A DNA stretch of 64,000 bases from Macrostomum lignano. Its lineage: Eukaryota. Both the position numbers and the translations under genes were made by a program. This document shows positions 13,012 through 37,400 of the stretch, piece after piece. Each line of letters starts with the position of its first letter. The stretch's first letter is position 1. The stretch covers positions 186,001 through 250,000 of the forward strand of contig NIVC01000788.1 in assembly GCA_002269645.1 (NCBI GenBank). The letters are read 5' to 3'. The notes beneath the pieces were generated by a model. It was given only the letters and a program-made list of their open reading frames with translations. It was not told where the DNA came from and ran no database searches.

Positions 13012-13664
<653 letters not shown>

Positions 13665-15319: not shown

Positions 15320-15556
15320 AGTAGCCACAAAAGCAGCAAGGTTAGCAACAGATTGCAACAACTGTTTGAGAAGCTAACAAAATCTCTTTACGCATAAATT
15401 CTGGCTCAGCAACAAGGAATTTTTCCGTCAGATTTGTCAGCGTCTCTCCGTATTGAACAGCCGCTATTTCTCCCCCTGATTCCTCTCGCTGCCCTCGTCT
15501 TATTCGCAAAGTCAATGCATTGCAAGTTGTCCTTAAGCCACAGATCCCAACGATTG

Positions 15557-15608
<52 letters not shown>

Positions 15609-15650
15609 CGTCTTGCCCATTCCTTCGGGAGGCTCGGCTCACCCACCTGT
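15320..15650 (-). other. Candidate first (5' UTR) exon of the GPCR with a (GA)n tract; upstream boundary unknown
   Basis: Consensus donor ACT|gtaagt at 15318-9, in unique sequence upstream of the GPCR. Confidence 0.3.
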
Positions 15651-15877
15651 CTTGTTTCAAGGCTAATGGCGAGGTTCCAAGATCTGGGCCGGCAGCTACT
15701 GATAACGGAATGTGGGGTTTCGGTTTGTTTGGCTACGGTCCGGTCGATTTTGTTGCTAGCTGCTGTCTCACAGATAATTGATCTGTGATTAGCAAGGATT
15801 TACGGGATGGAGAATGCGCCTAAGTTGCTTTGATGACAGGCACCCCAGTTGGGCGCTAAGCTTCTTGTTCTTATTAG

Positions 15878-16100
15878 TGGCGGGGGGTTGTGCGCACCCT
15901 GGCGCACTTCAAGCGACATTGTCACACAACCGGCGAGAGGCATTGCTCTCTATTCCGTCGACTCCCCTGAGAAGGCACACAAGCGCGCGGATACGTACGC
16001 AGTCATACGCACAGGCACACACTCACACAGGAGTGTAAAGCGGTCCAACTTTATTTATCGGTAGGCATGTACACTTCATGCTTTGGGGGTTGGCCCTTAA
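15878..16100 (-). mobile_element. SINE family A, copy 2 (head missing; abuts the 35-bp array)
   Basis: Shares cacaaccggcgagaggcattgct...gggggttggccctt with the other copies. Confidence 0.75.
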
Positions 16101-16102
16101 CT

Positions 16103-16655
16103 GAAAATCTAATGTCAAAGATAGCGCCATTTCAAATGCAAATCTAATGTCAAAGATAGCGCCCATTTCAAATGCAAATCTAATGTCAAAGATAGCGCCC
16201 ATTTCAAATGCAAATCTAATGTCAAAGATAGCGCCATTTCAAATGCAAATCTAATGTCAAAGATAGCGCCATTTCAAATTCAAATCTAATGTCAAAGATA
16301 GCGCCATTTCAAATGCAAATCTAATGTCAAAGATAGCGCCCATTTCAAATGCAAATCTAATGTCAAAGATAGCGCCGATTTCAAATGCAAATCTAATGTC
16401 AAAGATAGCGCCGATTTCAAATGCAAATCTAATGTCAAAGATAGCGGCCTTTCAAATGCAAATCTAATGTCAAAGATAGCGCCATTTCAAATTCAAATCT
16501 AATGTCAAAGATAGCGCCATTTCAAATGCAAATCTAATGTCAAAGATAGCGCCATTTCAAATGCAAATCTAATGTCAAAGATAGCGCCATTTCAAATGCA
16601 AATCTAATGTCAAAGATAGCGCCATTTCAACTGCAAATCTGATGTCAAAGATGGC
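16103..16655. repeat. Minisatellite, about 35-bp aaatctaatgtcaaagatagcgccatttcaaatgc
   Basis: Tandem periodicity. Confidence 0.96.
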
Positions 16656-17424
16656 GCCCAAAGGTTTGCTCGAGCGGAGTCAAAATTGTCCCGACCACTG
16701 AAATAATTTCATGACATTGAAGCCCTTTAAACCTATTCAACAGGACTATTAGCAATAGCATGAAAAGTGAAAGCAAAAAAGCGAAACGAACAGTGTTTTG
16801 GAGCAGCAGCATCAGCCTTCTCTCCTCGCTCTGAAACTTGAGCGCCAGTCGCCAACCTGAGTGGCTGAGCAGTGCATGCGACGCCCCCCCCCCAAACCGC
16901 CGCTCTCTCTCCCAGAGGCAGAATCGTCTCTATTTCCTGAACGATCGGGCCAGCTAACCCAAATCGCCTTCGATAGCCGGAAGTCTCTGGGAGCACAGGG
17001 GGGGGGGCGACCTTTTCCCAGCAATGCAATATTTTTCGGTTGCAGGAGTGTTTGCCCTCGGAATGACCTAGCCTCTATAGGAGCTGAATAGTGCCTGTGT
17101 GATCCTTTTATTTTGCCTGGCTGGCTGGAGATTTTCCTCGGATTTGAGTGCTTCTTGTTCTGCTGCTGTTTGACTAGTTCAGGCTGTTTCGCCTCTTTGA
17201 AGCTTGGGAGACCCATTTAACGAGGACACGATGACAAAGTCAGGGCCGCGCGCTGTACACCATGTGAGAGCGTGTGCGTTTCCGGGTGTCAACGGAATGA
17301 ACATTCTCACTGTACGCCGTGGGACTTGGGCCTCATGGGCGCGGAATTTAACCAATGGTACTCTCAGGACTCTGTTTGGAGTGCTACAAGAGTCTGACAA
17401 GGAGACAGGACGGACAAAAGCAGA

Positions 17425-17459
17425 CACAGAAAGACAGACAGACAGACAGACGGACAGAA

Positions 17460-17548
<89 letters not shown>

Positions 17549-17599
17549 GGCAGACAGACAGACAGACAAACAGGCAGACAGACAGACAGACAGACAGGC

Positions 17600-17632
<33 letters not shown>

Positions 17633-17661
17633 GGCAGACAGACAGACAGACAGACAGGCAG

Positions 17662-17736
<75 letters not shown>

Positions 17737-17739
17737 GGC

Positions 17740-17776
<37 letters not shown>

Positions 17777-17908
17777 GGCAGACAGGCAGACAGACAGACA
17801 GACAGACAGACAGACAGGCAGGCAGACAGACAGGCAGACAGGCAGGCAGACAGACAGGCAGACAGGCAGGCAGACAGACAGGCAGACAGACAGACAGACA
17901 GACAGACA
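17425..17908. repeat. (AGAC)n/(AGGC)n microsatellite
   Basis: Seen directly. Confidence 0.97.
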
Positions 17909-18840
17909 CGGGGACAAAAGCCTTGGCACAGACAGTCGCAGCCCCAAGTGTATTTGCACAAGGGAAAAGCTCTGTAGAACTGTCAGTCAAGCCCTGCAAT
18001 ACTTTCAGGCTCCGCACTGAATGCACGGCCGGAACTGATAAGATCCAGATGAACAGCGGATTGCAGTACTCGTAATCTATCGGCAGAAATCCCTAAAAAT
18101 AGCTGATTAAAAACGGGTTCGTGACACAGCAGCGCCGAACTGCCCGGGACATGTCAACCTCCCCCATCTGTCGAATTCGAGCTACCATTTTCTTATCGGA
18201 ATCTCGGAGTAAAAACAGCAGACTGGCATTTTTCCTGTAGCCAGAAGTGGCTTCACATTGCTTGTCTGAATATAACTGGGGTTTGCTATACTTTGAAATC
18301 GAATAGATCTTTATGGGATGCACCTCAGCCTGATGGTGAATAGGAAAAGACCAGAATCTCAGCAGCCATTTGGAGGTACAGATGCAGCTGCGGATGTACT
18401 TATTGGTTGAACAGAATGCTTCCGTGCTGAGACCAGATAAAGAAGTCTTTTCCCCATTAGTCAATAGATGGGCATCGAGCTTCAGCTGATTTCTTTCCCG
18501 CATGGCCGATCACCCGAAAGAAACGATATTGGCCAGGCGAGCAGACAGGTAGGGCAAGCGTCAAGTTTCAGTTCAGTCGATGCAATGCAGTGAATAAGCA
18601 TTCATGCAGCAGTTTACCCGTTTGTGAAAAAAAGAGAAATACGTTTTCGGTTGAATTATTTTTCAGCCGATGCTGTAACTTATCCCATTTGCTCAACTTT
18701 CTTTATGATGCTAATGAGGTAAACAGAATTCGATTTGAAAAAAACAAGTTTGGGAATTTTTAGTATTGTATGAATTCAAAAGTTTCTTTCTGCTATTTAA
18801 ATCTTGCAAATAGGTTTCAACCTAGCTTAAAATATATGCC

Positions 18841-19110
18841 AGCCAATCAGATCGTGTCGCACTCCAATGAAATCTCTACCCTAGCCCAGCACGTGACTCC
18901 TGGACAGCCAATCAGATCGTGCCGCACTCAATTGAAATCTCTACCCTAGCCCAGCACGTGACTCCTGGACAGCCAATCAGATCGTGCCGCACTCAATTGA
19001 AATCTCTACCCTAGCCCAGCACGTGACTCCTGGACAGCCAATCAGATCGTGCCGCACTCAATTGAAATCTCTACCCTAGCCCAGCACGTGACTCCTGGAC
19101 AGCCAATCAC
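18841..19110. repeat. 65-bp array of about 4 units, each with AGCCAATCAG and CACGTGAC
   Basis: Unit starts at 18841, 18906, 18971, 19036 and 19101. Confidence 0.95.
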
Positions 19111-19729
19111 ATTCGGCCGCATTCAATCACATTAATTTACGAGTATCAGGCATTCTTAAGCTAAGCGGTCAACAGAAACTGCGTTCCAATATTAAAAATA
19201 TCAAGCACATTATTTTAGATGAAAGTCCCAAATATTTTACGTTGAGCTGCGTAGAGGTGGCACGTAACCACGTGAGCTGAATGAATTGGGTCTCCATAAG
19301 CCCCGCCCCAGTACGCTCACCAATCCATCATTGCACGGCTATGACGAAATCTCTAAACAGCTTGGCAACCGCAGTGTATCCTAGAAAATATTGAATGAAA
19401 TCCGAAGCGCGCAGGAGAGAGTTAGGCAGGACGCTGTTTGCCTGATTAATTATTAATTAGGAATTCAGGCACAAACAATTGGCCTCTCAAAGTTAGCGGA
19501 ATATCAGCAGCCACTTACTATAACATGAAGCCATTTTATTGGCTCCAGCGGCTCAGCTTACATAAAAAGTTCACGTCCTTGAAAATCTTCCTGTGTTTAC
19601 CGCTGCATCGACACGGTTTTATAGTGTTCTTCTTTCATTTGCCTGTCCCAGGCAAAGAAGTTCCGTCAAATAGCGCATCTTTCACTACCTCATGTCCTTC
19701 GCTGTCCTTGCGGAGGGCGCTGCGCTTTG

Positions 19730-20598
19730 GGAAGATGCTGAGATGTCACGTCTCATGGGGGAATTGCTGAGATGTTTAAAACTCATGGGGGAATTGCTGA
19801 GATGTTTAAAACTCATTGGGGAATTGCTGAGATGTTTAAAACTCATGGGGGAATTGCTGAGATGTTTAAAACTCATGGGGGAATTGCTGAGATGTTTAAA
19901 ACTCATGGGGGAATTGGTGAGATGTTTAAAACTCATTGGGGAATTGCTGAGATGTTTAAAACTCATGGGGGAATTGGTGAGATGCTTAAAACTCATGGGG
20001 GAATTGCTGAGATGTTTAAAACTCATGGGGGAATTGCTGAGATGTTTAAAACTCATTGGGGAATTGCTGAGATGTTTAAAACTCATGGGGGAATTGCTGA
20101 GATGTTTAAAACTCATCGGGGAATTGCTGAGATGTTTAAAACTCATGGGGAATTGCTGAGATGTTTAAAACTCATGGGGAATTGCTGAGATGTTTAAAAC
20201 TCATGGGGAATTGCTGAGATGTTTAAAACTCATGGGGGAATTGCTGAGATGTTTAAAACTCATGTGGAATTGCTGAGATGTTTAAAACTCATGGGGGAAT
20301 TGCTGAGATGTTTAAAACTCATGGGGGAATTGCTGAGATGTTTAAAACTCATGGGGGAATTGCTGAGATGTTTAAAACTCATTAGGGAATTGCTGAGATG
20401 TTTAAAACTCATGGGGGAATTGCTGAAATGTTTAAAACTCATGGGGGGGATTGCTGAGATGTTTAAAACTCATTGGGGAATTGCTGAGATGTTTAAAACT
20501 CATGGGGGAATTGCTGAGATGTTTAAAACTCATGGGGAATTGCTGAGATGTTTAAAACTCATGGGGGAATTGCTGAGATGTTTAAAACTCATGGGGAT
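19730..20598. repeat. Minisatellite, 30-bp gaattgctgagatgtttaaaactcatgggg
   Basis: Tandem periodicity. Confidence 0.97.
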
Positions 20599-21359
20599 TG
20601 GTAGGCTAAGCATCAAAGGGAGAGTTAGGGTTAAGCCATGACTATAAGGGAGGCTTTGATGCCACCAGGGGATGCTGATATCTTAGCTAGATAGCTGCCT
20701 TTCATTAAGAAATCGTTAAGAGATTTCCCTTAAGAAACCAACAGTGACAGTACAAGGTTAAAAGCTTTCAACGTATATAAAAGTGAATTAAAATTAAATT
20801 AAAACAGGAATTTCAGCGCTTTCTGTGCAGCATCACGGTTAGAATAGCTGATGAAGAGTCAGGACCAGCAACTTTATTTCAGTAGAATCAGATACAGAAA
20901 CGATAAGATCAGTCCGTATGCTTATGGTCTGCTGACTATTAGAAAATACACACAGACAGGCGCAGCGAGAGCCAATAAATACGCATTTGGCTACTGGCAG
21001 TAGTGTGACAATGGACAAACTCACGGGAGGCAATTTAATGAAAAAATGTTCTGCTCGAAACTGTAAATTATAACTATTAACAATAGATGGAGCAAAAAGC
21101 TAATAGGGGATTCTAACATCAACAGTTTGCAAAAATGTGCATAATACAAAAAATGAAGTCAAAAAAATTTATAAAAAAGACACCAAAATGTGCATCTGTC
21201 ATAATGGCTGTATTCATTCAGTTTTACGGTACAAATCAAAATGAACTGAACAAATGGAAAATTGTTCTGTGAAAAAAACAAATATTGGACAAAATCAACT
21301 CATCTGTAACTTACTCTTTGTTTTCTCTCCTTTTGACTTTTGAGCTTTTCCGCATTTCT

Positions 21360-21400
<41 letters not shown>

Positions 21401-21409
21401 GCATCTTAG

Positions 21410-22172
21410 AACACCCCGTCTCTTTCTGCAGCCACCTCACTCCCTGCCCCAACACCCCAACTCTTCCTGCAGCCACCTCACTCCCTGCCCCAACACCCCA
21501 ACTCTTCATGCAGCCACCTCACTCCCTGCCCCAACACTCCAACTCTTCCTGCAGCCACCTCACTCCCTGCCCCAACACTCCAACTCTTCCTGCAGCCACC
21601 TCACTCCCTGCCCCAACACTCCAACTCTTCCTGCAGCCACCTCACTCCCTGCCCCAACACTCCAATTCTTCCTGCAGCCACCTCACTCCCTGCCCCAACA
21701 CCCAACTCTTCCTGCAGCCACCTCACTCCCTGCCCAACACTCCAACTCTTCCTGCAGCCACCTCACTCCCTGCCCCAACACCCAACTCTTCCTGTAGCCA
21801 CCTCACTCCCTGCCCCAACACCCAACTCTTCCTGTAGCCACCTCACTCCCTGCCCCAACACCCCAACTCTTCCTGCAGCCACCTCACTCCCTGCCCCAAC
21901 ACCCCGACTCTTTCTGCAGCCACCTCACTCCCTGCCCCAACACCCCGATTCTTCCTGCAGCCACCTCACTCCCTGCCCCAACACCCCAACTCTTCCTGCA
22001 GCCACCTCACTCCATGCCACAACACCCCAACTCTTCCTGCAGCCACTTCACTCCCTGCCACAACACCCCGACTCTTCCTGCAGCCACTTCACTCCCTGCC
22101 CCAACACCCCAACTCTTCCTGCAGCCACCTCACTCCCTGCCCCAACACTCCAACTCTTCCTGCAGCCACCTC
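21410..22172. repeat. Minisatellite, 41-bp cttcctgcagccacctcactccctgccccaacactccaact, just 3' of the CASK stop
   Basis: Tandem periodicity. Confidence 0.96.
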
Positions 22173-22296
22173 ATGGAAAGAGAGAGAAATACAGAGGCAA
22201 AAGTCGATGCCAAATCAAATTAACTAAAAATATGCAATAGTGACGCAAATTAAAAGAATACCTAGATATGCATGGAGTGTCAGACAGAGAAGCGTT

Positions 22297-22473
22297 TCAA
22301 TAAACCCAATTGACTGGCACCCATTGCGGCTTAGTCTGAACCTGGTCAATGCAGTGCTTCAGCTGGCTTATTGTCTCCTCGATGTCATTATTAACAATCT
22401 TCTGATCGAAATAGTGGCCGTAGTGCCGCTCTAAAAGTTCGCTTTCCTTGGCCAGGCGCTCCAGACTTCCGTC
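22297..22473 (-). CDS. CASK: CASK terminal exon ([14 protein letters not shown]...[10 protein letters not shown])
   Basis: Acceptor cttgtgcag. TGA at 22297-9. Confidence 0.97.
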
Positions 22474-25400
22474 CTGCACAAGCGAAATTGATACTTGATG
22501 ATCAGGTCAGTGTCTCCTGACTGAGGGGACAATAGTGTATCAATAGTAAAAGTTTTACGGCACTCACATTGAGCCCGTGCACGTCGCTCATGGCGCTGAG
22601 CTCCGGGGCGGCAATGAACACAACGTAGGGCGCAAATTCTGCCGTTCGAAGCACGCGCAACGCCTGCGGCTCCACGTCGAGAATAGCGATGCGACCCTGC
22701 CGGTGAATGTCCCGGATGGTATCCAACTTGGTGCCGTACATGGCGTCCTCATGGGTGCCGTACTCCAGGTACTCGTTGTTGGTTATATCGCGCATCATCT
22801 CCTCACGTCCGACAAAATAATAGCTGCGACCATTCACCTCCCCTTTGCTGGGCAGTCGGGTCGTGTCTGCGGGTTGGGGAGGGCATTTAAGTTCAGCGAT
22901 TTTAAACGACAGTTAAAGACAGAGGACAGTTGCGCAGGGTTGGCAACCAATCAGAATCAGTGGTGAGGAGGGGGTTGGCAACCAATCACAATCAGTGGTG
23001 AAGAAGTGGCTGGCAACAAATCAGAATCAGTGGTGAAGAAGTGGCTGGCACCAATCAGAATCAGTGATGGGGGAGGGGGTTGGCAACCAATCAGAATCAG
23101 CGGTGTTGAGGTGGCTGGCAACCAATCAGAATCAGCGGTGGGAGGTGGCTGGTAACAACCAATCAGAATCAGCGGTGGGGAGGTGGCTGGCAACCAATCA
23201 GAAATAGCGGTGGGGAGGTGGCTGGTAACAACCAATCAGAATCAGCGGTGGGGAGGTGGCTGGCAACCAATCAGAATCAGCGGTGGGGGGTGCGCTGGCA
23301 ACCAGTCAGCAGCCGGAAGTCTCACGCGGAATCGGATACGCGAAGCGGTCAGGCGCAGTCTGTATGAGCGTATTTTTGATGTGCCGCCTGCCAACTCCAT
23401 GAGCCCCCAGCAGCACCAGAGTCTTCCGCCGGAAGTTGGTCAGCCGCACCACCTCTTCGTAGGTGACCATCTCCAGCTGGTCGTAGGGAGTCGGCGCCGA
23501 TGCTGATGACGCCGCAGTGGACGAGGCGGCAAGGCCCGAGCCCGAGGCGTGCTTGCTGCGCGACTTGCCGCCGCCTCCGCCGCCGCCGCCGGAGCGCCAG
23601 CCGTGATGTCGACGGCCGAACGAGAAAAACGGCAGGCCAGAACAGTTCAAAGCGCTGTCGAGCTTCTTGGAGCGCTCGATGGCGCTGCAGGCGGTGCGCC
23701 ATTCTTGCAGCTCCGGCGAGGGGATCAGGCTGGCCGGCGTGTTGGCCGGTGCGTTCCACGACCGAGCCTGCGAAAATGGCGCGGCGGAGTCAGTAGGGTA
23801 GAGAGTAGAGTGGATTAGTAGGGTAGAGAGTAGAGTGGATCAGTAGGGTAGACGGTAGAGTGAGTCAGTAGGGTAGAGAAGAGGGGTCAGTAGGGTAGAC
23901 GGTAGAGTGGGTCAGTAGGGTACAGAGAAGAGTGGGTCAGTAGGGTAGAGGGTAGAGTGGATCAGCAGGGTAGAGAGAAGAGTGGATCAGTAGAGAGAAG
24001 AGTGGATCAGTAGAGAGAAGAGTGGATCAGTAGGGTAGACGGTAGAGTGGGTCAGTAGGGTAGAGAGTAGAGTCAATCAGTAGAGTAGAGAGAAGAGTGA
24101 ATCAGTAGGTTAGATGGTAGAGTAGGGTAGAGAGTAGATTGGATCAGTAGGGTAGAGAGTAGAGTGGATCAGTAGGGTAGAGAGAAAAGTTGATCAGTAG
24201 GGTAGAGATTAGAATGGGTCAGTAGGGTAGAGAGTAGAGTGGGTCAGTAGGGTAGAGAGTAGAGTATATCAGCAGGGTAGAGAGTAGAGTGGATTAGTAG
24301 GGTAGAGAGTAGAGTGGATCAGTAGGGTAGACGGTAGAGTGAGTCAGTAGGGTAGAGTAGAGGGATCAGTAGGGTAGACGGTAGAGTGGGTCAGTAGGGT
24401 AGAGAGTAGAGTGGATCAGCAGGCTAGAGAGTAGAGTGGATTAGTAGGGTAGAGAGTAGAGTGGATCAGCAGGGTAGAGAGTAGAGTGGATCAGCAGGCT
24501 AGAGAGTAGAGTGGATTAGTAGGGTAGAGAGTAGAGTGGATCAGTAGGGTAGACGGTAGAGTGGGTCAGTAAATTTAGAACAGATTCAGTTGCTGACCTG
24601 CCACCAGTTGTGATCGTCCTTGCTGATGACCTGCAGGATGTCGCCAACCCGGAAGCGGATGCCAGCCTGGGGGCAGGGGTTCAATTCGTCGTCGTCCGGA
24701 TTGTAGCTGAACATGGCCTTCACGTAGATCTGCGGGTTAATAGAGGAAATCAGAATAACTAGCACCAGAGCAGCCACGGAACTTCACCATTCACGGTTTG
24801 TGAAGCTTGGGGATTGTGAAGCTTGGGGATTTGAAGCTTGGGTTTGGGAAGTTAAGGAATCTTGAAGTTTGGGGATTGTGAAGATTAGGGATTAGAAGCT
24901 TGGGGATTTGAAGCTTGGATTTGGGAATTTTAGGGATCGTGAAGCTTGGATTTGGGGAGTTAAGGAATCTTGAAGCTTGGGGATTTGAAGCTTGGGTTTG
25001 GGAAGTTAAGGAATCTTGAAGCTTGGGGATTGTGAAGATTAGGGATTAGAAGCTTGGGGATTTGAAGCTTGGATTTGGGAAGTTTAGGGATCGTGAAGCT
25101 TGGGGATTTGAAGCTTGGGGATTTGAAGCTTAGGGATTTGAATCTTGGGCTTGGGAAGTTTAGGGATTGTAAAGTTTGGGTTTGGTAAGTTTGGGGATTG
25201 TGAAGCTTGAGGATTTTGAAGCTTAGGTGTTTGTTTCAAATAGTAACAATAGCAGCGAAATATAATAATAAATTTTTACCTCGCACTGCATCGGGTGATT
25301 CCGGTAGCTGGGCACAATTTTGAGCGTTACACTGCCTCTGGCCTCCTTCTGCAATCAATTGATAACACCCAGCAGGTGCAGCAGGTGCAGTAGTAAGTTT

Positions 25401-28400
25401 GCTATATTATAAATTATTTCTTATTAACGATTAACAGAGCGAAAAACAATTGAAGTTAATTCGCTTAAAAAATCACTTTCAATACGAAAATCGTTAGTGT
25501 ACTTTTATATAAAAGTACATGTTAAAGACAGTAGCCTCCGGGTAATGTAATAATGAGACTAACGAATTACTCTGTCTCCAACACCTAATCAGGTTAGACT
25601 GGCAGATCTTCTCTCCACATTTCTTCAGCTGAATTCGTACATTAAAACTATCGAAAAAATTGATTATTACTGAATTGAACAGATTATTTGAAGAGCAAAA
25701 CTCTCAGTAAGATCTCAGTTTCTGTTAATCAAGCAATAAAAATAATGTAATTATTAATAACGCAAATCGAACCTATATTACCAATCGGTTTTATAGCAAC
25801 ACTTCAAAGCGCTAGTAAAGTTTTTTTATTTAAAAAGTACCTCCTTAGCCGCCGAGTGACTGCCCGCCGCGGTTCGAGGGCCGCCGGGCCGCCCGGCAGG
25901 GTGGGACACCAGCCTCAGCGTCACCCTGCCGCGCAAGTCCATCTGGACGTGTGATGTTCATCCGGCCGAGATGAGAGCGGTAAATACGCTTACTTATAAA
26001 GTAACAATTCTAGTGAATAAAAGAACTAGGGATAGTAGCCCAGCGGTTATAGTGCCCGCTTTCCATTCATCTGGTCTGGATTTCAGGCGGGTTCGAATCT
26101 TTGCGGCCATTTAAAAAAATTTATCAGGGTTTTTCATAACAAAAAGCATTTCTAACTACTGCTAATAGCGTGCAACAATGCCGTTATAATTTGAAATTAT
26201 CAATTGATATTTGACAACGCTCAATTACTAAGCACTTCCCCGATATGTATCGAAAGATAGTATCGTGAATCAGAAAAACACACACCAGCATTCGTTGTAG
26301 AACTTCCACTGATTGGCCAATGACTGGTTCGCCATTGATTTCTCGAATCTCGTCGCCAACGTGCAGAGTGCCTGAGGAAAAATATGGCATATGTAAATAT
26401 GAATAACTTGGAAAAAGTACATTGATGACTACGAGCGTGTTTTGAGAATTATATGATCAAACTCACCTTGCCGGTGAATCATTCCACCGTGCATGATTCG
26501 GGCCACAATTATCTTGCCGTCCTCAGACATCTTCAGAGTGATTCCCTACAATTTATAACAAATTGATTTGTTATTGATAAGTCATTGGATGGATGGGTAA
26601 CGCTAAAGCTGAGCTCACCATAGGCTCGTTAGTATTCTTCTGAAACTGCACCAGGCGCACACGGGTCACATTGTCCATCTCAACCTCGGGAGGCTCCTCC
26701 GCGTCGCCGTTCAAATAGGACGACACTGGCGGCGGGGTCACTCTTATTGCCTGGTCGCTGTACACATCCTGGGCTAGCACGTCGTGCGCTTGCAGCAGGG
26801 CCTGCGGGTGGCAGTGGAGGGCTGTGTTCTATGCAGGGACTGCCTGTCCCACAGTGGGGCCGGGTCGGCCCTGAACTCAAAGGGGTTGCCAGCGGATGGT
26901 CTCGCTCAAAAAGCAGTTGGATATCCTCAAAAGAAGTCCAGTAAAAAAAGTTGCCAACACACAAGAGCCGAGAAAGCAGCCCTATCAAGCACCCACGGGA
27001 CCCGGAGAAATGAGCATATTCAACAAAAATCGATAATGAAATCGAGACCAATCAATCCATGCGAAGCCTAGTTGAGGCTTACCCACAGGACAATATCGTC
27101 TCGATGGCCGCACAGCATTTAATAAAAATGCGGAACGAAGACTTTCGGGGAGAGAGAGAGAGACAGGCAACTCAAATGTCTGAGTCCCCTGTAGCAGTGG
27201 TGTTAATAGCTGGGGAAATGTGCTGACAGCAAAGAGGGCAGGCGAGCAAAGTGGAAGCCAGTCGTAAATAGGCATAGCAAGACGGAGTTAAAGGGGGGAA
27301 GCGTAGATGAAGCATTAATTAGCCTATAGCGCTTGCACTTGCGCCGCCGCCGCTCCCACTCCATTGGGCAGCTGGGATTGGGGAAAATTACAGCTTGACA
27401 GACGGGCGGACAGACTCTGCGTGAGACAGCAGTATAGAGAGCCGATTTGGTAAAACAAAACTAACGGGATGCAAGCGGCACCTCCGGCGTGACTGTCCAT
27501 TTAATCCGAATGCCACAGTGTGAGGAAAATAAGCCGGATATTGCGGACAACCGGAGAAGCGAAGAGAGGAGGATTAGAGAGCGCGGGAGAGGCGGCTGAC
27601 ACCGATTTTAATTAGACTCGTGTAGATTTTCATTGCAGAGGTGGATTAGGATTACGAAAATACAAGCCGAGACAGCAATTAATATTTCGGCCAACACAGC
27701 AACTGGATGTGTTTTCTGAGATTCTCGGATAGTAGAGCAGCGTCTTAGGCGTAGACAGGGGGCTTCAGGGCGATTCTGGAGAGGATTCAGGGCGATTCTT
27801 GGGAGGATTCAGGGCGATTCTTCGGGAGGTTTCAGGGCGATTTTTAGTGAGGTTTCAGGGCGATTCTTGGGGAGGATTCAGGGCGATTCTTGGGGAGGTT
27901 TCATGGTGACTTTTAGTGAGGTTTCAGAGCGATTCTTGGGGAGGATTCAGGGCGATTCTTGGGGAGGTTTCATGGTGACTTTTAGGGAGGATTCAGGGCG
28001 ATTCTTCGGGAGGTTTCAGGGCGATTTTTAGTGAGGTTTCAGGGCGATTCTTGGGGAGGATTCAGGGCGATTCTTGGGGAGGTTTCATGGTGACTTTTAG
28101 TGAGGTTTCAGAGCGATTCTTGGGGAGGATTCAGGGCGATTCTTGGGGAGGTTTCATGGTGACTTTTAGTGAGGTTTCAGAGCGATTCTTGGGGAGGATT
28201 CAGGGCGATTCTGGGGAGGGTTCAGGGAGATTCTTGGGGAGGATTCAGGGCGATTCTGGGGAGGGTTCAGGGAGATTCTTGGGGAGGATTCAGGGCGATT
28301 CTGGGGAGGGTTCAGGGAGATTCTTGGGGAGGATTCAGGGCGATTCTGAGGAGGGTTCAGGGAGATTCTTGGGGAGGATTCAGGGCGATTCTGGGGAGGA

Positions 28401-31400
28401 TTCAGGGCGATTTTCGGAGAGTAACGAGACGTGTTCTTGAAGGCAAATCATGAAGCAGTGCTTTCAAAAGTGCAGACTGCTTCTGAGAACACAGGAGTGG
28501 TTAATGAAGTTAATGAATTGTGCACTACAAGCCCAAAACTCGTGCGCCCGAGCGAAACTCTGCAACGAGTAAAACACAGGCCTTACAGAGCAGTCCCAAA
28601 ATCTCCATAATTAATTCAACTACCCGTCTTGAAAGCGGGATAGCTAGTTGTTACACAGTGCGTGACCCGAACGCGCCACACAAGTCTAAAGCTAGTTTAA
28701 TTCCACCAGTGGCTAGGTTTGGCGAAATTGGTGTTTCTCGTTACCCTGCATCTATATATACTACTTAACTATATTTGCATATTCTAAAACTCGTTTAGCC
28801 TGCCTAGTACAACAAAACTATTAGATTTACCGGAATGAAACTCCTGAAAATCCAGCACCCGATTATATACCCCAGAGCAGCACCAGCACCCCATTATATA
28901 CCCCAGAGCAGCACCAGCACCCCATTATATACCCCAGAGCAGCACCAACACCCCATTATATACCCCAGAGCAGCACCAACACCCCATTATATACCCCAGA
29001 GCAGCACCAACACCCCATTATATACCCCAGAGCAGCACCAACACCCCATTATATACCCCAGAGCAGCACCAACACCCCATTATATACCCCAGAGCAGCAC
29101 CAACACCGCAGCACCAGCACCCCATTATATACCCCAGAGCAGCACCAACACCGCAGCACCAACACCCCATTATATACCCCAGAGCAGCACCAACACCGCA
29201 GCACCAACACCCCATTATATACCCCAGAGCAGCACCAACACCGCAGCACCAACACCCCATTATATACCCCAGAGCAGCACCAACACCGCAGCACCAGCAC
29301 CCCATTATATACCCCAGAGCAGCACCAACACCCCATTATATACCCCAGAGCAGCACCAACACCGCAGCACCAGCACCCCATTATATACCCCAGAGCAGCA
29401 CCAACACCGCAGCACCAGCACCCCATTATATACCCCAGAGCAGCACCAACACCGCAGCACCAACACCCCATTATATACCCCAGAGCAGCACCAACACCCC
29501 ATTATATACCCCAGAGCAGCACCAGCACCCCATTATATACCCCAGAGCAGCACCAACACCCCATTATATACCCCAGAGCAGCACCAGCACCCCATTATAT
29601 ACCCCAGAGCAGCACCAACACCGCAGCACCAACACCCCATTATATACCCAGAGCAGCACCAACACAAAACCACTCTTAAGCACTTTAATTACCAGAAAAT
29701 GCGAACTCACGGAGATCTTGCGACGCCCTGAAGTCCAAACAAGAGCGCACAGCTGAGCAGAGCTGATGAGGAGAAACTACACCAGACACACACAGAGCTT
29801 GGATTCGATCACTGAGCAGCCAGTTATCCCATCTAACAGGGAGGGGGAACTGCTGGAGGACAGCGCGTCCTCCCCTAACCGGGTTTGCAACCTCAAACAG
29901 CCAATTGCTGCTGGGGCCGAAAAGTTTTCAGCTGCCCTCCCACCCTGACCTGGCCACCCCAACCCCGCTTCCATGTCGGAGGTTGCCACTTATTCACTTC
30001 CTATGCCGATCTTGGAGTGTGCAAGATCACGCACAGAGAGGCCTTGTACACACTGGCATGCGCCCTCGCGCTTTTAGCCTCATCAGCTGTAGTTTGGTTG
30101 GTGGGCACCGGCCGAGGACCCCAAGAGAATTTCAGCACACTTATTGTTAATAGTAGTTTAGAGTATGCATATATGATTTGCTGTTTATAACTCACTCTGC
30201 CACTTACCCAGCAGTCCCGTACTTTATATTTCCCATTCCCCCCCCCCCCAGGGAGGTCACCAAGGGTCGGCGGCAGAGGGCGCCTGTTCAATCAACGAAC
30301 AGATCCGGAGCAATCAGACTCAACTACGGATGTTAAATAAAAACTTGAGGCAGAGATCTGACTAGAGATAATGGGGAAAGCCTAAGGGAATAGGAAGGGT
30401 TAGATTGGGTCCATTAGTTTAGTTTTAGAGCAATAATTTGCATATAGAGATAAAAAACGCGATCTACTACTGTCATGTGATGAACAGTAGTGTCGACTGC
30501 TTTTCAACTATTAAAAAAAGCTACGCAAATACTCGCACTTCAATGCTACGAGTACGGTAATTAGATGACCGAGGAACAGTAAGTTATTTGATGACTGAGG
30601 GACAGTGGGTCATTTGATGACTGAGGGACAGCGGGTAATTAGATGACTGAGGGACAGTGGGTCATTTGATGACTGAGACGGTAGTTCATTAGATGACTGA
30701 GACGGTATTTCATTTGATGACTGAGGGACAGCGGGTCATTTGATGACTGAGAGCCAGCGGGTCATTTGATGACTGAGAGACAGTGGGTCATTTGATGACT
30801 GAGGGACAGCGGGTCATTTGATGACTGAGAGACAGTGGGTCATTTGATGACTGAGGGACAGCGGGTCATTTGATGACTGAGAGACAGTGGGTCATTTGAT
30901 GACTGAGAGACAGTGGGTCATTTGATGACTGAGAGACAGTGGGTCATTTGATGACTGAGAGACAGTGGGTCATTTGATGACTGAGAGACAGTGGGTCATT
31001 TGATGACTGAGGGACAGTGGGTCATTTGATGACTGAGACGGTAGTTCATTAGATGACTTAGATAGTAGGCCATTTGATGACTGAGACGGTATTTCATTTG
31101 ATGACTGAGAGACAGTGGGTCATTTGATGACTGAGAGACAGTGGGTCATTTGATGACTGAGGGACAGCGGGTCATTTGATGACTGAGGGACAGCGGGTCA
31201 TTTGATGACTGAGAGACAGCGGGTCATTTGATGACTGAGGGACAGCGGGTCATTTGATGACTGAGAGACAGTGGGTCATTTGATGACTGAGAGACAGTGG
31301 GTCATTTGATGACTGAGAGACAGCGGGTCATTTGATGACTGAGAGACAGCGGGTCATTTGATGACTGAGGGACAGCGGGTCATTTGATGACTGAGAGACA

Positions 31401-34400
31401 GCGGGTCATTCAGTGGGTCAACATGGATGACTCACTGGTGATGAAGATGAGAGGCGGATACGAGACTCGGGCAGAGATGAACTGAGACTCTCACCCTGAG
31501 ATGCGGCCCATTGAGCAGCTGGCGCAGCTGCAGGCAGTCTGCTACATAATCTTTGTCGTGGCACTCGGCCAGGCAGTCCAGGGCGTCTTGAGTTCGCGAC
31601 ACAGCGTCCGCCGGTATCTGGCCGCGTATGCTGGCGCCCAGGTTTCTGCTGTTGATCTGGTCGTAGAGCTGACAGGAAAGCGGGGGGGGGGGTGGCGTCT
31701 GTGTTTTAAAAGCACCATAGGAGATACGAGCGAGTATTGAAATACTCGTATTCCAAAATTAAAGTTGACAAGCAAGCGAGCAGACAAATATAATCGAGCT
31801 ATGACTAATTTGAGTTCAGTTTCAGGTCATAAATCAATTCATGCAGTTTACGTCAACGATAGTTATTTTAGCTATTAAATCAATTAAGTTTAAGCCAGTT
31901 CAGTTGAGATTAGTTTACTTCAGTTCACTTCATTTGAGTTCAGTTCAGTTCAGTTCAGTTTAGTTCAGTTCAGTTCAGTTCAGTTCAGTTCAGCTAAGCT
32001 CAGCTTTCTGTTCAGCCCATCAGCTCACGAACGCAAAAGAATGAAAAATAGAAATAAAGAAATAAAAGGGTACAATGCTGTGCATACTCCCTCATTCCCG
32101 CATTCTGAAGAAATCAAAGCAAGTCATATTTCAAGTCAAGCACTCGTGCTACTGGGTGCTAATCCAGCTGTATTTATTTATAAACTCAGCTGTGAATCTT
32201 AATAACAGAAAATATCTAAAACACACAAACACATACGCGCAAAGATTGCATAACATAAATCACTAACAAAACTGTCCAGTTGGACTGACAGGATCCAGTT
32301 AAAATACAGTTAGCTTAATTTATTATGAAACACCCAGGTCACTAGAATCCACCCCAAACCCTAGCAGCGTACAGTCGCGCGCAGCCCTAACACCAATTTC
32401 AAGATATATTTGTTTGTTAGAAAACGCAAACTAATGATTAACGATTTCCTAAAGCCTGCTCTTCTCCGACTTGAGCCCTCGTGCCTGAGGGGAGGTCAAA
32501 TTTTAGTTGAGGAAAAAAACTCCGACTAATGATGCTGAGCAAAAACTGTTTGAGCAGTCAAAGTCCGTGACAGTCGGAGGCACCAGCGGAATAGGCCTCA
32601 TTATCAGCAATAAAAAATCTCGTTTGCGAAAACTTTTTAATGACAAAGAAGAATTTGCTGTTCCTGAAGGCTTTCGAGTTTAAATTTTTTTTGCTGTTCA
32701 AAAGCCTCACTCAACGAATCAAAGAGTCGAGTTTGGTCAGGAGTGCCAAGATTGATGTCAGCAGCAATAAGATTGGTGTCAGGAGCACAAATATTGGTGT
32801 CAAGAGTGCCAAGATTGGTCGTCAGGAGTGCCAAGATTGGTTGTCAGGAGTACCAAGATTAGTTGTCAGGAGCACCAAGATTGGTTATCAGAAGCACCAA
32901 GATTGGATGTCAGGAGCATCAAGATTGGTTATGAGGAGGAGCACCAAGATTGGTTATCAGGAGTGGCAAGAGTGGTGTCAGGAGCACCAAGATTGGTTAT
33001 CAGGAGTGGCAAGAGTGGTGTCAGGAGCACCAAGATTGGTTATCAGGAGTGGCAAGAGTGGTGTCAGGAGCACCAAGATTGGTTATCAGGAGTGGCAAGA
33101 GTGGTGTCAGGAGCACCAAGATTGGTTGTCAGGAGCACCAAGATTGGTTATGAGGAGCACCAAGATTGGTTATCAGGAGTGGCAAGAGTGGTGTCAGGAG
33201 CACCAAGATTGGATGTCAGGAGCACCAAGATTGGTTATGAGGAGCACCAAAATTGGTTATCAGGAGTGGCAAGAGTGGTGTCAGGAGCACCAAGATTGGT
33301 TGTCAGGAGTGGCAAGAGTGGTGTCAGGAGCACCAAGATTGGTTGTCGGGAGTGGCAAGAGTGGTGTCAGGAGCACCAAGATTGGTTGTCAGGAGCACCA
33401 AGATTGGATGTCAGGAGCACCAAGATTGGTTTCAGGAGTGGCAAGAGTGGTGTCAGGAGCACCAAGTGTGGTGTCAGGAGCATCAAGATTGGTGTCAGGA
33501 GTGCGAAGCAAGGTTGGTTGATGGGATTGCCAAGATTGGTTGCCAGTGGCGCAGAAAGAGGCACCCAAAGCAAAATCTGGGCCTCAATGAGCTTAAATCT
33601 TTGAGCCGCTGAGGGGGCCTTAGATTTGATATGATTTATATCCATTTTTGCGCGCTCCGATGCGGAAAAACATCCCACTAATATTTTCTATCATCGTCGG
33701 TTCGCTGAAAAACCGTCTTTCCCAAACGATATCGTTTCCATAGCAACGAATAAAAAGTACGCGCGCAAGCACAGAAGCGTATGGGAGAAGCCTAGGAAAT
33801 CCAGTATCTGGTGGCATCGAATCGCGTGACACTCAGCTTCTGAAAACTATAAAGTTATCTACATCACAAAACTACCCCCGCTCCAAAATCCCATAAATTA
33901 GCGAATTTTTTCAGCATCCAGATAATCTGAGCCAATCCGATAAGGCGCATTTATTAGCAAAGCTTTTTTGCACACATTGCAAAACAAAAATTGATTTTTT
34001 TCTCCCCGATTTGCTTGCCGTGCGTTTTTTTTGAGTAGCCAGCACGCCACGCGTCCAATTGATGATGAAGAAGGAGTGTAGAGAAGTCGATTTAAAACAC
34101 GCAATGCAGCTCAATATGCCGGATGCTTGAAGAAGTTTTTGCTCGGACTTCTATGCTGGGCAAAATATAATAATAATAATTATTATTATCAGTATTATAT
34201 AAGTGCTAAGCTCCCGTCGTGAGCTGGGAACTATTCGTGCTTGATTAGAATCCCTCTTTGTGACCACACCAGCGCATCTCTCCTCTCTCCAGTTTAGGCG
34301 CACTTATTAAAAGAAGATTGCAAAGACAGAGTCGCCAGTCAGTTTCATTCGGGGCTGGGAAATACGAAGGCGGGAAGCAATGGGAATTGAAGGTCAACGC

Positions 34401-37400
34401 TAGTTTAACACGCGGGGCCGATGCTTGGGCGGCGCTGGTTTTCAAACCGAACCCAAGCCCAATGAGCCCTCTGGGAATTGAAGCTGGGAAGCTGGGAAAA
34501 GTAGACAGAGATGAGGGGGGCAGAGGGGCAAATTATGAGACTCTCATAATTCATTAGCTGGCAAAAAGGAAAGGCAAAGAAGGGAAGCTACAAGAAGCAG
34601 TAGAAGGCTTGACCAGGTCGAGGACAGGGTCGGGAGGGAGAGCACAGCACATAAGAAGAGGAGGAGCTCTAAGAGGGCAGGGGAGAGCGCTGAGGTGGGC
34701 ACTAGGAGACAATTTTGGGCTGTCCTGGCAGCAGAATTTCAAATTCCAATCCGCTGCAGAGCATCTCTCCTTCTTTCCACTCCCCTCTGCAGTGCCCCTT
34801 CTCGGTTCTGCACCCTCCGCAAGGAGCCCCGCCACCATCAGCGCACGCTCGTTTGCTCGCTCGCTCGCCAAAAAAAGAACTCGTCGCCTCTTCTAGCGGC
34901 GCCGAGCTCCCCAAAGTCCCAGCTAATTAGGGGCGGATGGGGAGGTGAGGAGAGAGAGGGCTGGGTGGCAGGAGAGGCAGCAGAGGTTGGCCATGTACTT
35001 GAGCTGATTACAGCGAGTTCCTTTAGACTAATAATACTCTGATTTCCCAGTAGTCTCTAACTCTACCCACTGCGGTTGACCCACCGCTTGGTCGGGTATC
35101 TCATCATAGTCAGTTATATTCCTGTCAGATCCCTACATCTGAAGATCCCAGATCCCTAAAACTAAAGATCCCAGATCCCACAACTAAAGATCCCAGATTC
35201 CTACAACTAATGAGCCCAGATCCCTACATCTGAAGATCCCATATCCCTACAACTAAAAATCCCATATCCCTGCAACTAACGAGCTCAGATACCTACAACC
35301 AATGAGCCCAGATCCCTACTAATGAGCCCAGAACCCTACTAATGAGCCCAGATCCCTAAAACTAATGAGCCCAGATACCTGAAAATAAAGATCTCAGATC
35401 CCTAAAACTAAATATCCCAGATCCCTACAACTAATGAGCCCAGATCCCTACATCTGAAGATCCCATATCCCTACAACTAAATATCCCAGATCCCTACAAC
35501 TAATGAGCCCAGATCCCTACATCTGAAGATCCCATATCCCTACAACTAAAGATCCCAGATCCCTACAACTAATGAGCCCAGATCCCTACATCTGAAGATC
35601 CCATATCCCTATAACTAAAGAGCCCAGATCCCTACATCTGAAGATCCCATATCCCTACAACTAAAGATCCCAGATCCCTACAACTAATGAGCCCAGATCC
35701 CTACATCTGAAGATCCCACATCCCTACAACTAAAGATCCCAGATCCCTACAACTAATGAGCCCAGATACCTGAAAATAAAGATCCCAGATCCCTAAAACT
35801 AAATATCCCAGATGCCTACAACTAATTAGCCCTGATCCCTGAAAATAAAGATTCCAGATCCCTTCAACTAAAGATCCCAGATCCCTACAAGACAATAAAT
35901 GGCGTTATTTATTATTCATCGAGACATAGAAAGACTTTAGAGGAGAATTTGAACTGGAAAAGCAAACAGCGCTGCAGCTGCAGCAGGTGACTGTAAGCAA
36001 ACAAGACAGGGAATCCCACTTCCCAATCCAAATTAGCACCATCCTTTCAAAAAGTGAAATGGAAAATTTCGAGAAGAACACTAAGACGAACCAAAGAAAA
36101 AAGGCAAACAGTGGACGATGCAAGGATGCGCGAGTAAAACAGGGAAATAGGATATAGGAAGGGCATATCCAGTGCAGACAGTCAATGGGAAGCCATCTGG
36201 ACCGGGTAATCAACGTTTCTCCCTGGAGGTTTCGGTTTTTTTACGGAACTCTTCACTTCAGGTCTGGTCCTCTACACCTCTCTGCAATTTGTCTCAAGCA
36301 AATATAATAGACAAGCGGCACTTACTGTTGAATATGATTAAAAAGATAAATATGAATATGCTGTGGGCACCCTGGCGCAACCAAGTGGTCTAGCGCGGCG
36401 CTTTAATGTGCCAGCGGCCCGATTCCAAGTGCAGTCGCTTTAATTCAGGGCTAAATTGGAATCTCGGCTTGGCTCTGCTCGTGCAGCTAACGCCCTTGAG
36501 GGCCAACCCCATAAAAGCAAAGTGAAGTGTACATGTTTAACGATAAATAAAGTTAGGACCGTTGTACACTCCTGTGTGAGTGTGTGCCTGTGCGTATGAC
36601 TGCGTACGTATCCGCGCGCTTGTGTGCCTGCTCAGGGAAGTCGGCGGAATGGTTGGACTATATTTCTATTACATACACATATGGTACATTCACGCCCTCG
36701 AAGGTCAACCTCCAAAGCACACAGAGAGTGCCTGACTAGGAGACAGTCAGGGCCGCTGTACACCCTGTGTGAGCGTGCGTGCTCAGGGGTCAGTGTGGCA
36801 TATCTACAATTTTTCCTTCTCTCCAACTCCGAGTCGATTTGCGGCGGCTTTGAAAAATACGATCCCCTTTTCTCACTGTGCGACAAACTAACCGATGAAT
36901 AAGTAACTATTCGAACTTCAAACTGCCACTAAGAGATTAAACATCACAGGCTGAGGGGCCAACACAATATGAGTCATCAATCATTATAGGATTACAGATG
37001 CGACTGTGATTGGAATATAAGGATCGCGTGTGTAGCAGCTGACTTTGATGAAGTAGCAGCTATAGCACTGGGGCTATTGGCCTGCCTAAGTTAACACAGC
37101 CGCCTATCGATAATAGTATAGAATTATCGCTGTGTGATTGCAAGCTTGCACTCAATTACATGTAGGGAGCGCCTCTGTGCCTGCCACTCTGAGCAATGTA
37201 GAGTTTACATGAAAATATAGTGGGATTATGGAATTGATTATCAATATACGGTAACTTATGGGATTATGAACTGTACCGATTGGGATTGTGAATTGAACCG
37301 ATTGGGATTATGAAATGAACGGATTAGGATTATGAATGAAACCGATTGGGATTATGAATAGAAACGATTAGGATTATGAATGGAACCGATTGGGATTATG

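Follow-up and report, generated by a model that had tools for sequence, protein, structure and literature searches.

A duplicated alternative exon at the end of the CASK PDZ domain in the flatworm Macrostomum lignano

The classical mutually exclusive exon pairs, such as exons 2 and 3 of alpha-tropomyosin and the exon clusters of Dscam, arose by tandem exon duplication, and their exclusive use is enforced either by a donor and branch point that lie too close together or by competing RNA pairings. CASK is a central synaptic scaffold. Its PDZ-SH3-GK module has been described as a single ligand-binding unit, and the PDZ-SH3 linker of human CASK has two cassette exons, numbered 19 and 20, for which a role in adjusting flexibility and partner binding was suggested (PMC8208546). 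In addition, annotated Branchiostoma CASK isoforms (X4, X28 and X44) contain two tandem copies of a 23-amino-acid exon at this junction, both singly and together.

We found that a CASK gene of M. lignano has two neighbouring exons between the PDZ exon ending in LQRML and the first SH3 exon: a divergent exon A, followed by a conserved exon B. Like the alpha-tropomyosin and Dscam exons, A and B are adjacent, homologous and of the same phase, and they encode the same structural element; unlike them, they have no detectable enforcing mechanism, and their joint inclusion is documented in a deposited coding sequence (CDS). Exon A resembles human exons 19 and 20 in that splicing alters the PDZ-SH3 tether within the PDZ-SH3-GK module, although the human exons lie downstream of the B-type exon as unrelated linker inserts, bear no homology to their neighbour and provide no second copy of the last PDZ strand (betaF). 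Amphioxus shares with M. lignano the tandem duplication of the same exon, but both of its copies belong to the B type, scoring 50-55 bits on the profile for that type, and its duplication looks separate and more recent.

A divergent exon ahead of a conserved B-type exon is also seen in annotated CASK isoforms of molluscs, nemerteans and one brachiopod. In Mytilus edulis (X25/X26), Crassostrea, Lineus longissimus (X2) and Lingula (X3), where an A-type form is annotated, the pair occupies the same site, after a ...LQ.ML exon and ahead of SH3. As in M. lignano, the divergent copy comes first, an order confirmed in the genomic DNA of Lottia and Ruditapes, and any combination of the two stays in frame. 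The divergent kind is ~27-35 aa long with a core of G-x-V-T-hydrophobic-K/R-hydrophobic-V, shared by these pairs and M. lignano as G-x-V-T-(F/L/I)-K-(V/I), and nearly always ends in ...KE, whereas the conserved kind follows the pattern ...SYR..P..CE. The M. lignano exon A studied here is longer (34 aa) than most other spiralian A-type exons (27-33 aa), is much more diverged and has a GC-rich, low-complexity tail. On a mollusc/nemertean A-type profile the M. lignano A-type exons gain nothing over their scores on a B-type profile, so the profiles cannot prove orthology; what supports orthology of the A-type exons between phyla is their position, order and KE ending, not sequence statistics. No A-type exon was detectable in the CASK loci of two parasitic flatworms (Schistosoma japonicum and Opisthorchis felineus) and one annelid (Capitella). 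The A/B pair is probably old and already visible in databases. The first-pass annotation of this DNA had known of no such pair for CASK; our literature search likewise found no paper describing one, but isoform pairs are already annotated at NCBI for molluscs, nemerteans and a brachiopod, and exon A itself lies in the GenBank CDS of the locus.

The window, that is, the whole 64-kb stretch of M. lignano DNA analysed, was 100% identical to contig NIVC01000788.1 and carries the CASK gene on its minus strand. Using a human CASK sequence as tblastn query, we found that residues 178-926 were colinear with window positions 62281..22300, the first ~177 human residues lying outside the mapped region. 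The nearest database proteins were CASK entries with Pkinase, L27, PDZ, SH3 and Guanylate_kin Pfam domains, and the CASK domain order (kinase, two L27, PDZ, SH3, guanylate kinase-like) was found. Together, the colinearity and the closest entries bear out the initial assignment of the gene to CASK. The coordinates, lengths and phase proposed for the two exons also agreed with the sequence (Table 1).

Table 1. Features of the M. lignano CASK gene between the PDZ and SH3 exons (window coordinates).
Feature	Position	Strand	Basis
PDZ exon, 26 residues + (G)	26467..26545	-	Sequence; start of deposited 5'-partial CDS with exon A
PDZ exon ending LQRML, (G) + 28 residues	26286..26371	-	Sequence, tblastn, present in PAA76839.1
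Intron, LQRML exon to exon A, 343 nt, AT-rich	25943..26285	-	Sequence
Exon A, 102 nt, 34 aa, phase 0-0	25841..25942	-	Sequence and GenBank CDS PAA76839.1
A-B intron, 492 nt, GT...AG	25349..25840	-	Sequence
Exon B, 69 nt, 23 aa, phase 0-0	25280..25348	-	Sequence, tblastn (human CASK query)
Intron, exon B to SH3 exon, 550 nt	24730..25279	-	Sequence
First SH3 exon, 44 residues, begins IYVKAMF	24598..24729	-	Sequence, tblastn

The LQRML exon begins in phase 1 and ends in phase 0, with the donor CTG/gtgtgt after 26286 (a slash marks the splice junction). Both A (cag/ATGGAC...AAGGAG/gtac) and B (cag/AAGGAG...TGCGAG/gtaa) are bounded by AG and GT, and all A/B combinations stay in frame because both exons are phase 0-0 and their lengths are multiples of three. 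The intron ahead of A contains an antisense tRNA-like element, and a minisatellite (24798-25228) makes up most of the intron between B and SH3.

Exon B encodes as many residues as the matching segment of vertebrate CASK entries among the matches listed and scored 63 bits on the B-type profile, as expected of the canonical CASK exon that it had been taken to be. Exon A forms the GC-rich island in an AT-rich intron described at first pass, with 76% GC at 25850-25949 against 25-38% in the surrounding intron. Over their first 13 residues A and B share six identities and score 30 under BLOSUM62 without gaps; no other non-self segment in any of the six frames of the window matches this part of B better. 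This score was reached by 2 of 5000 first-order Markov sequences modelled on the 937-nt interval from LQRML to B, and by 6 of 5000 simulated with the composition of the GC island. However, an unrelated antisense 13-mer at 26579 scored 31 against a paralogue A-type exon, and exon A itself scored 6-7 bits on either the A-type or the B-type profile, so the A-B similarity is by itself weak; homology is clearer in the paralogues, where one A-type exon (A2) matches B at 9 of 14 residues. The case for exon A is carried by its position, phase and splice sites, its paralogue-like ...AAGGAG/gt ending and an RNA-derived CDS.

That CDS, PAA76839.1, belongs to this locus and joins the LQRML exon, A, B and SH3 at exactly the boundaries of exon A, the protein reading ...LQRML-MDLRGRV...AAKE-KEARGSV... 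The GenBank annotation of the assembly was built from RNA-seq and transcript assemblies only (StringTie, TACO and de novo transcripts), with no ab initio prediction (PMC5730564). The product of a sister gene copy, PAA74978.1, also has the A+B form. By contrast, the full-length PAA89370.1, from a third near-identical copy, joins LQRML directly to B and SH3, and its lack of A is the sole difference; the corresponding entries P0241 (A+B) and P0242 (B-only), annotated on different near-identical gene copies, otherwise agree over their shared region.

Furthermore, an A-type exon was found at the same place in the three other M. lignano CASK paralogues, four being examined in all. Those of loci L002 and L003 read KSLRGMVTIKIVPNLSVSRSSHQLSMLKE and KSLRGMVTIKIVPSLCAPKTVCQSFKE, each preceded by cag/ and ending AAGGAG/gta, and the fourth paralogue (P0248) has RHLQGMVTIKIAPNLSRMIGSHRASLFKE ahead of its B exon. 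The L002 and L003 exons differ over their first 13 codons by five synonymous and no non-synonymous changes, and their significant alignment, with 400 nt compared on each side, is confined to the acceptor and the first 44 nt of the exon. Splicing into an RNA-derived CDS and retention in the paralogues together support the first-pass view that exon A is real. We therefore favour, with a probability of roughly 0.75, the reading that A is a genuine transcribed exon which arose by duplication of, and diverged from, the CASK exon for the end of helix alphaB, betaF and the start of the linker, and that it is retained under selection and optional at the locus. The duplication would most likely date at least to the early spiralian lineage, since the same arrangement occurs in four M. 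lignano paralogues, molluscs, nemerteans and a brachiopod, which suggests a single ancient origin of the A-type exon. Its optional use would be reflected in the inclusion of A before B here and in the direct joining of LQRML to B from the near-identical copy.

Inclusion of A would change the segment that forms betaF and would lengthen and loosen the PDZ-SH3 tether. In an AlphaFold model of an A-only PDZ-SH3 construct, which leans on homologues in its alignment, residues 83-91 (GRVTLRLVS) formed strand betaF, with a mean pLDDT of 87 over residues 81-90. Across the PDZ domain pLDDT was 81-90 except for one loop block at 64, the tail (94-109) was modelled as disordered, and the model was colinear with the human CASK PDZ structures 6NH9 and 1KWA. 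Exon A is thus predicted to be able to supply the alphaB end, betaF and a longer linker, as first proposed, and in this model to provide the same structural element as B; the PDZ region of an A+B model was uninformative. We infer that the altered tether could tune ligand binding by the PDZ-SH3-GK module, for example of neurexin tails.

The first-pass annotation had considered A and B probably mutually exclusive. If exclusivity were strict or predominant, transcripts in vivo would carry either A or B, the A+B model would reflect a minor by-product or a path taken in assembly, and the filtered GenBank annotation would lack an existing A-only isoform. Other species make such use plausible: in Mytilus edulis, an A-type versus a B-type segment is the sole difference between isoforms X25 and X26, a clean swap, and A-only products are found in oysters (one encoded on a 4.6-kb Logan contig), Aplysia, Patella, Liolophura, Batillaria, Tubulanus and Lingula. 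In addition, A alone completes the predicted PDZ fold, and the 54-nt spacing between A and B in Lottia could sterically block their joining. However, A and B occur together in products of Lineus (X2), Lottia, Ruditapes and Acanthosepion, and M. lignano differs from the molluscs, which also have A-only products, in that its deposited CDSs are A+B or B-only. We found no A-only M. lignano product in protein searches or in the cluster listing, and both A-containing products also contain B, so that on present deposited data A occurs in this species only together with B, an outcome that the first-pass annotation had itself named as speaking against an exclusive pair.

Nor did the locus reveal a means of preventing joint inclusion. 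The in-frame lengths, the size of the A-B intron (enlarged to about 3.3 kb in L001, the sister copy, by a ~2.8-kb insertion) and the GT-AG sites leave no enforcement by frameshift and NMD, by steric hindrance or by U2/U12 incompatibility, in keeping with what had been anticipated for NMD and steric hindrance. The further suggestion of RNA pairing fared less well: in a crude whole-intron test with RNAduplex, which a short selector could escape, inter-intron duplexes were no stronger than those of shuffled sequence (z = +0.6 to +2.9). The one 12-nt perfect complement (26197-26208 with 25354-25365) is about what chance would give, and the paralogues lack its B-side arm upstream of their B exons. 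We conclude that A is a duplicated alternative exon whose exclusivity with B is unproven, and we regard strict or predominant exclusivity in M. lignano as possible but doubtful.

Exon A in the window might instead be a decaying relic, a fast-drifting remnant, left from an ancestral alternative exon, whose occasional in-frame inclusion is tolerated splicing noise with no specific function. Consistent with this, non-synonymous differences from the A-type exons of the paralogues affect 7 of its first 13 codons, whereas the protein of exon B is identical in this gene and two compared paralogues (0 of 23 codons non-synonymous, with synonymous changes only); moreover, the Gly/Pro/Ala-rich tail is modelled as disordered, the polypyrimidine tract ahead of A is weak, and the A-containing models are both 5'-partial. 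The poor conservation and the low profile scores suggest that constraint may be relaxed in this paralogue. Against decay, the exon has kept its reading frame, its two splice sites, its KE ending and the strand's hydrophobic pattern V-T-L-R-L-V, and the replacements are conservative (I to L, K to R). It is also undamaged in each of the two sequenced copies examined, which differ over its 102 nt by one substitution, an H/Q codon difference that separates the gene copies, and it was abundant enough to pass into an expression-filtered transcript assembly. A relic is, in our view, an unlikely explanation.

It is also conceivable that splicing is fixed by copy, two copies always including A and the third never doing so, for example because exon A or a splice site is damaged there. 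The models with A+B and with B only do lie on different contigs, and reads multi-map between the copies because these are 93-97% identical. The evidence against this is indirect: the retrieved products of the other M. lignano paralogues skip or misjoin the A-type exon, and since B-only products there come with an intact A-type exon, skipping it is normal in the species; we consider copy-specific splicing very improbable. A chance open reading frame, to which GC-rich DNA poor in stops in every frame and a modest A-B similarity equalled by an unrelated antisense 13-mer might have pointed, is refuted by the splicing of A into an RNA-derived CDS at exact boundaries and by the homologous exon that each paralogue examined has at this position.

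The duplicated, optional exon that we favour may be part of something larger, although we hold the full proposal to be distinctly unlikely: an ancient spiralian exon pair for betaF and the tether, undescribed in the literature, in which the PDZ domain of the tandem form could close with either of two competing betaF segments. Such splice-controlled and possibly conformationally switchable coupling of PDZ to SH3-GK would tune the binding of neurexin/syndecan-type ligands, and the choice between A and B would be under some non-classical form of regulation.

For annotation, the locus illustrates how easily a divergent exon copy is missed. For CASK, a conserved alternative exon able to substitute for the last PDZ strand or to double it, and at the same time to set a new tether length, would offer a natural means of controlling PDZ-SH3-GK coupling. 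Four paralogues in one flatworm tractable to transgenesis, together with molluscs that show a clean swap, offer a comparative system for asking how an exon pair shifts between exclusive and joint use without obvious enforcement.

Human CASK residues 178-926 mapped colinearly to the window from 62281 to 22300 on the minus strand, and a protein search with the reconstructed 765-aa product returned M. lignano CASK proteins as its top matches. Between the PDZ exon that ends in LQRML and the SH3 exon, the first-pass annotation had placed two phase 0-0 exons, a divergent exon A and the canonical exon B for the last PDZ strand and the PDZ-SH3 linker. We found both exactly there, bounded by AG and GT and each in phase 0-0, with introns of 343 nt (LQRML to A), 492 nt (A to B) and 550 nt (B to SH3). 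Exon A forms an island of 76% GC within intron sequence of 25-38% GC. A repeat or transposon as the origin of this island was rejected, as blastn of 25780-26130 against the window gave only the self match. An RNA gene was likewise rejected as the source of the interval, as Rfam (gathering and E-value thresholds) and ARAGORN found nothing credible, the sole match being snoRNA-like (17 bits, E = 3.8).

Coordinates of the exons between the PDZ and SH3 exons of CASK, their counterparts in two paralogous loci, and intronic repeats
Feature	Coordinates	Strand	Remarks
PDZ (LQRML) exon, 3' end	26286	-	followed by gtgtgt; read from the minus strand of 24600-26500
Exon A	25942..25841	-	cag, then ATGGAC...GCTAAGGAG, then gtac; 102 nt, 34 aa
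Exon B	25348..25280	-	cag, then AAGGAG...CAGTGCGAG, then gtaa; 69 nt, 23 aa
SH3 exon, start (IYVKAMF)	24729	-	sequence reading
A-type exon, L002	26420-26506		KSLRGMVTIKIVPNLSVSRSSHQLSMLKE
A-type exon, L003	27622-27702		KSLRGMVTIKIVPSLCAPKTVCQSFKE
Minisatellite arrays, CASK introns (examples)	24798-25228, 23790-24571, 27764-28412, 28852-29665, 30556-31410

The surroundings of these exons have features of their own. The CASK introns at 20000-31410 and beyond are dense in minisatellite arrays with periods of 20-90 nt and copy numbers of up to 33, and the B-to-SH3 intron is almost entirely one such array. At 26035-26120 on the plus strand, antisense to CASK and in the intron just upstream of A, lies a tRNA-like element with an A-box-like motif (TAGCCCAGCGGTTA), a B-box-like motif (GGTTCGAATC) and a T run about 25 nt past the latter. 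Neither ARAGORN nor Rfam called this element, which L001, the sister copy of the gene, shares and the other fetched loci lack; a tRNA pseudogene and a SINE head are possible identities. The hook-region exon between SH3 and GK (23306-23650, minus strand) encodes eight consecutive glycines and a stretch rich in Ser and Ala that is missing from the other paralogues and from the CASK of other species. An intronless 373-aa ORF (11845-12966), which follows CASK on the minus strand, encodes a receptor of the rhodopsin family (Pfam 7tm_1, E = 5e-72) that by eye resembles biogenic-amine receptors.

Exon A is transcribed. The deposited protein PAA76839.1 (P0241; BOX15_Mlig017014g1) matches the exons of the window exactly, with A joined to B, and its locus in assembly Mlig_3_7 is 100% identical to window positions 36545..12297, which identifies the window as contig NIVC01000788.1 of that assembly. 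The passages on annotation in the source describe the Mlig_3_7 GenBank gene models as built from RNA-seq (SRP082513, SRR2682326; STAR, StringTie) and a de novo transcriptome, merged with the TACO meta-assembler and then passed to TransDecoder, and these passages describe no ab initio gene finder (PMC5730564). Since the annotation is thus transcript-based and PAA76839.1 contains A, this exon was already part of a transcript-derived CDS, with the boundaries that the first-pass annotation proposed. The product of the sister copy, P0127 (BOX15_Mlig017014g2), also carries A and B in tandem; a CAC/CAA (H/Q) codon difference in exon A distinguishes the copies. Its cluster has two other members, PAA76839.1 and PAA89370.1 (P0242), the latter a full-length product of 949 aa from a third near-identical copy, in which the absence of A is the sole difference over the shared region. 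The deposited CDS of the locus joins A to B and not to the SH3 exon, and it is 5'-partial, beginning at the GITLK exon (26545); either the transcript assembly was broken there or a shorter, A-carrying PDZ-SH3-GK transcript exists. Exons for the kinase and L27 domains of this gene are seen upstream within the window (62281..26619), though the deposited model starts at 26545.

The first-pass annotation had further described the first 13 residues of A and B as paralogous; 6 of the 13 are identical (BLOSUM62 score 30). In all six frames of the whole window, the 13-mer of A was the top non-self match to that of B, and a score of 30 was reached by 2 of 5000 first-order Markov simulations of the 937-nt LQRML-to-B interval and by 6 of 5000 that used the composition of the GC island. 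We did not rely on this resemblance alone, because the A-type exon of a paralogue scores 31 with an antisense 13-mer at 26579 that is unrelated to it, and window A itself gets no more than 6-7 bits on the profiles of the two exon types. The existence of the duplicated exon is confirmed, and the case for it is stronger than in the first-pass annotation, since A is transcribed, is kept in four paralogues and has a counterpart-like alternative exon in other spiralian phyla.

Two further CASK paralogues of M. lignano were compared at the locus level (L002 and L003); these genes are 74% identical to the window gene and 82% to each other. Each has a divergent exon between the LQRLL exon and the B exon, preceded by cag, ending in AAGGAG before gta, and in phase 0-0. 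Within the first 13 codons of these two A-type exons, 5 codons have changed and all five changes are synonymous. When 400 nt on either side were included, the alignment was limited to the acceptor and the first 44 exonic nt, except for a marginal 19-nt match near the exon 3' end (E about 0.1). This is the mark that purifying selection leaves on a coding exon. In the window gene, L002 and L003 the B exon specifies an identical 23-residue sequence, and its nucleotide differences are all synonymous. Window A is the outlier, differing non-synonymously from the other A-type exons at 7 of 13 strand codons; its reading frame, splice sites and KE ending are preserved, and so is the hydrophobic pattern (I>L, K>R). 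In addition, the product of a fourth paralogue (P0248) has an A-type segment, RHLQGMVTIKIAPNLSRMIGSHRASLFKE, ahead of the B exon (residues ~255-320). In that model the two segments are joined through apparent read-through intron sequence, and the products P0140 and P0249 likewise have an A-type exon extended at its 5' end.

The structural role assigned to A, as an alternative source of strand betaF and the linker, also held. We modelled a PDZ-SH3 construct containing A alone with AlphaFold, using an alignment of 30 homologues. The PDZ domain was predicted with pLDDT 81-90 except in a single loop block (64), helix alphaB spanned residues 71-80, and the strand at 83-91 (GRVTLRLVS) was contributed by exon A; residues 94-109 fell below 50, and the SH3 domain was well modelled. 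Furthermore, this construct aligned with the crystallised human CASK PDZ (6NH9, 1KWA) without gaps through a 12-residue segment. The model thus shows A to be compatible with the role of B, which is compatibility and not use, because the alignment itself biases the prediction toward a PDZ fold. The deposited A+B product, a partial CDS without the first PDZ strand, gave pLDDT <50 over the PDZ region, so that this truncated model supports no conclusion on which copy forms betaF.

A scan of the retrieved CASK proteins for the segment bounded by ...LQ.ML and I(Y/F)V(R/K)A revealed a divergent second form of it in bivalves (Crassostrea, Saccostrea, Mytilus, Mya, Ruditapes), gastropods (Aplysia, Patella, Lottia, Batillaria), the chiton Liolophura, the cuttlefish Acanthosepion, the nemerteans Tubulanus and Lineus, and the brachiopod Lingula. 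This segment is the sole difference between Mytilus edulis isoforms X25 and X26, and a 4.6-kb Logan contig, which must therefore be spliced RNA, yields an A-only oyster product of 618 aa. In the products that have both versions (Lineus X2, Lottia, Ruditapes, Acanthosepion), the order is that of M. lignano, with the divergent version ahead of the conserved one; the divergent version nearly always ends in ...KE, the conserved one in ...CE. Genomic DNA of Lottia has A at 30291-30377 (AAGGAG, then gtaaga), a 54-nt intron (30378-30431) and B at 30432-30500, and that of Ruditapes confirms the order. The Lottia intron is short enough that A-B joining might be sterically difficult; steric hindrance as an ancestral enforcing mechanism is not general, since the same intron is 760 nt in Ruditapes. 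A profile scan detected only the B exon in the Schistosoma japonicum and Opisthorchis felineus loci, and in Capitella the 60-nt LQ.ML-to-B intron is too short to accommodate a further exon. The CASK genes of Asterias and Tubulanus each span >100 kb. Amphioxus CASK differs in having two copies that are both B-type, apparently the result of a separate duplication. An A-type profile search of a 50%-identity representative library was uninformative on distribution, because isoforms collapse there to single clusters. The M. lignano A-type exons score 19-22 bits on the A-type profile from other phyla and 17-21 bits on the B-type profile, on which the B exon scores 63 bits; they are clearly not B-type. 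As they score no better on the A-type profile, we infer a single old origin of the A-type exon from position, order and shared ending rather than from a statistical result.

The first-pass annotation had suggested that A and B are probably mutually exclusive, which the deposited products do not support. In protein searches and the cluster listing, the products of the window gene were A+B or B-only, the RNA-derived products of the other paralogues were all B-only, and A-only products were absent; the GenBank product set is filtered, and the A+B and B-only models belong to separate near-identical copies, among which multi-mapped reads blur the assignment. The first-pass annotation had correctly reasoned that neither NMD nor steric hindrance would enforce exclusivity: all exon combinations are in frame, all splice sites are GT-AG, and the A-B intron has 492 nt. 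In the sister copy this intron is about 3.3 kb because of an insertion of ~2.8 kb (L001 11057-13891, window ~25495-25503), possibly a mobile element, that carries a 543-aa antisense ORF, and the deposited product of that copy still joins A to B. The docking/selector RNA pairing proposed instead was not upheld. Whole-intron RNAduplex energies among the three introns were weaker than those of Markov shuffles (z = +0.6, +1.8, +2.9), and an inverted-repeat scan gave only short AT-rich arms and one perfect 12-nt complement. The latter is built on the palindrome ATCAATTGAT; one arm (26197-26208) is in the intron preceding A, the other (25354-25365) is 6-17 nt upstream of the B acceptor, and their pairing would put exon A in a loop. 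By a rough estimate, chance alone would give about one match of this kind in AT-rich sequence of similar length, and its B-side arm is missing upstream of B in the paralogues. On current data the pair is therefore not mutually exclusive in M. lignano, or at least not strictly: homology, phase and structural equivalence agree with an exclusive pair, but the deposited products do not show the defining use of exactly one exon per transcript, and the search for an enforcing mechanism found none.

In human CASK, the cassette exons 19 and 20 are alternatively spliced in the PDZ-SH3 linker, and their inserts have been speculated to alter the flexibility of PDZ-SH3-GK and hence the strength of partner binding (PMC8208546). 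These exons affect the same part of the protein as A and B but are not copies of the strand exon. The earlier statement that no such pair was known to be described for CASK agrees with the literature, where full-text searches found no description of a duplicated or exclusive exon pair in this gene, but not for public annotations, which already contain it, including the CDS of the window locus. The A/B pair thus appears undescribed in the literature and is not categorically new, being a further example of the alternative use of a duplicated exon. Taken together, the pair works like a tandem-duplicated alternative exon pair, in which A resembles an alternative exon found across spiralian phyla.
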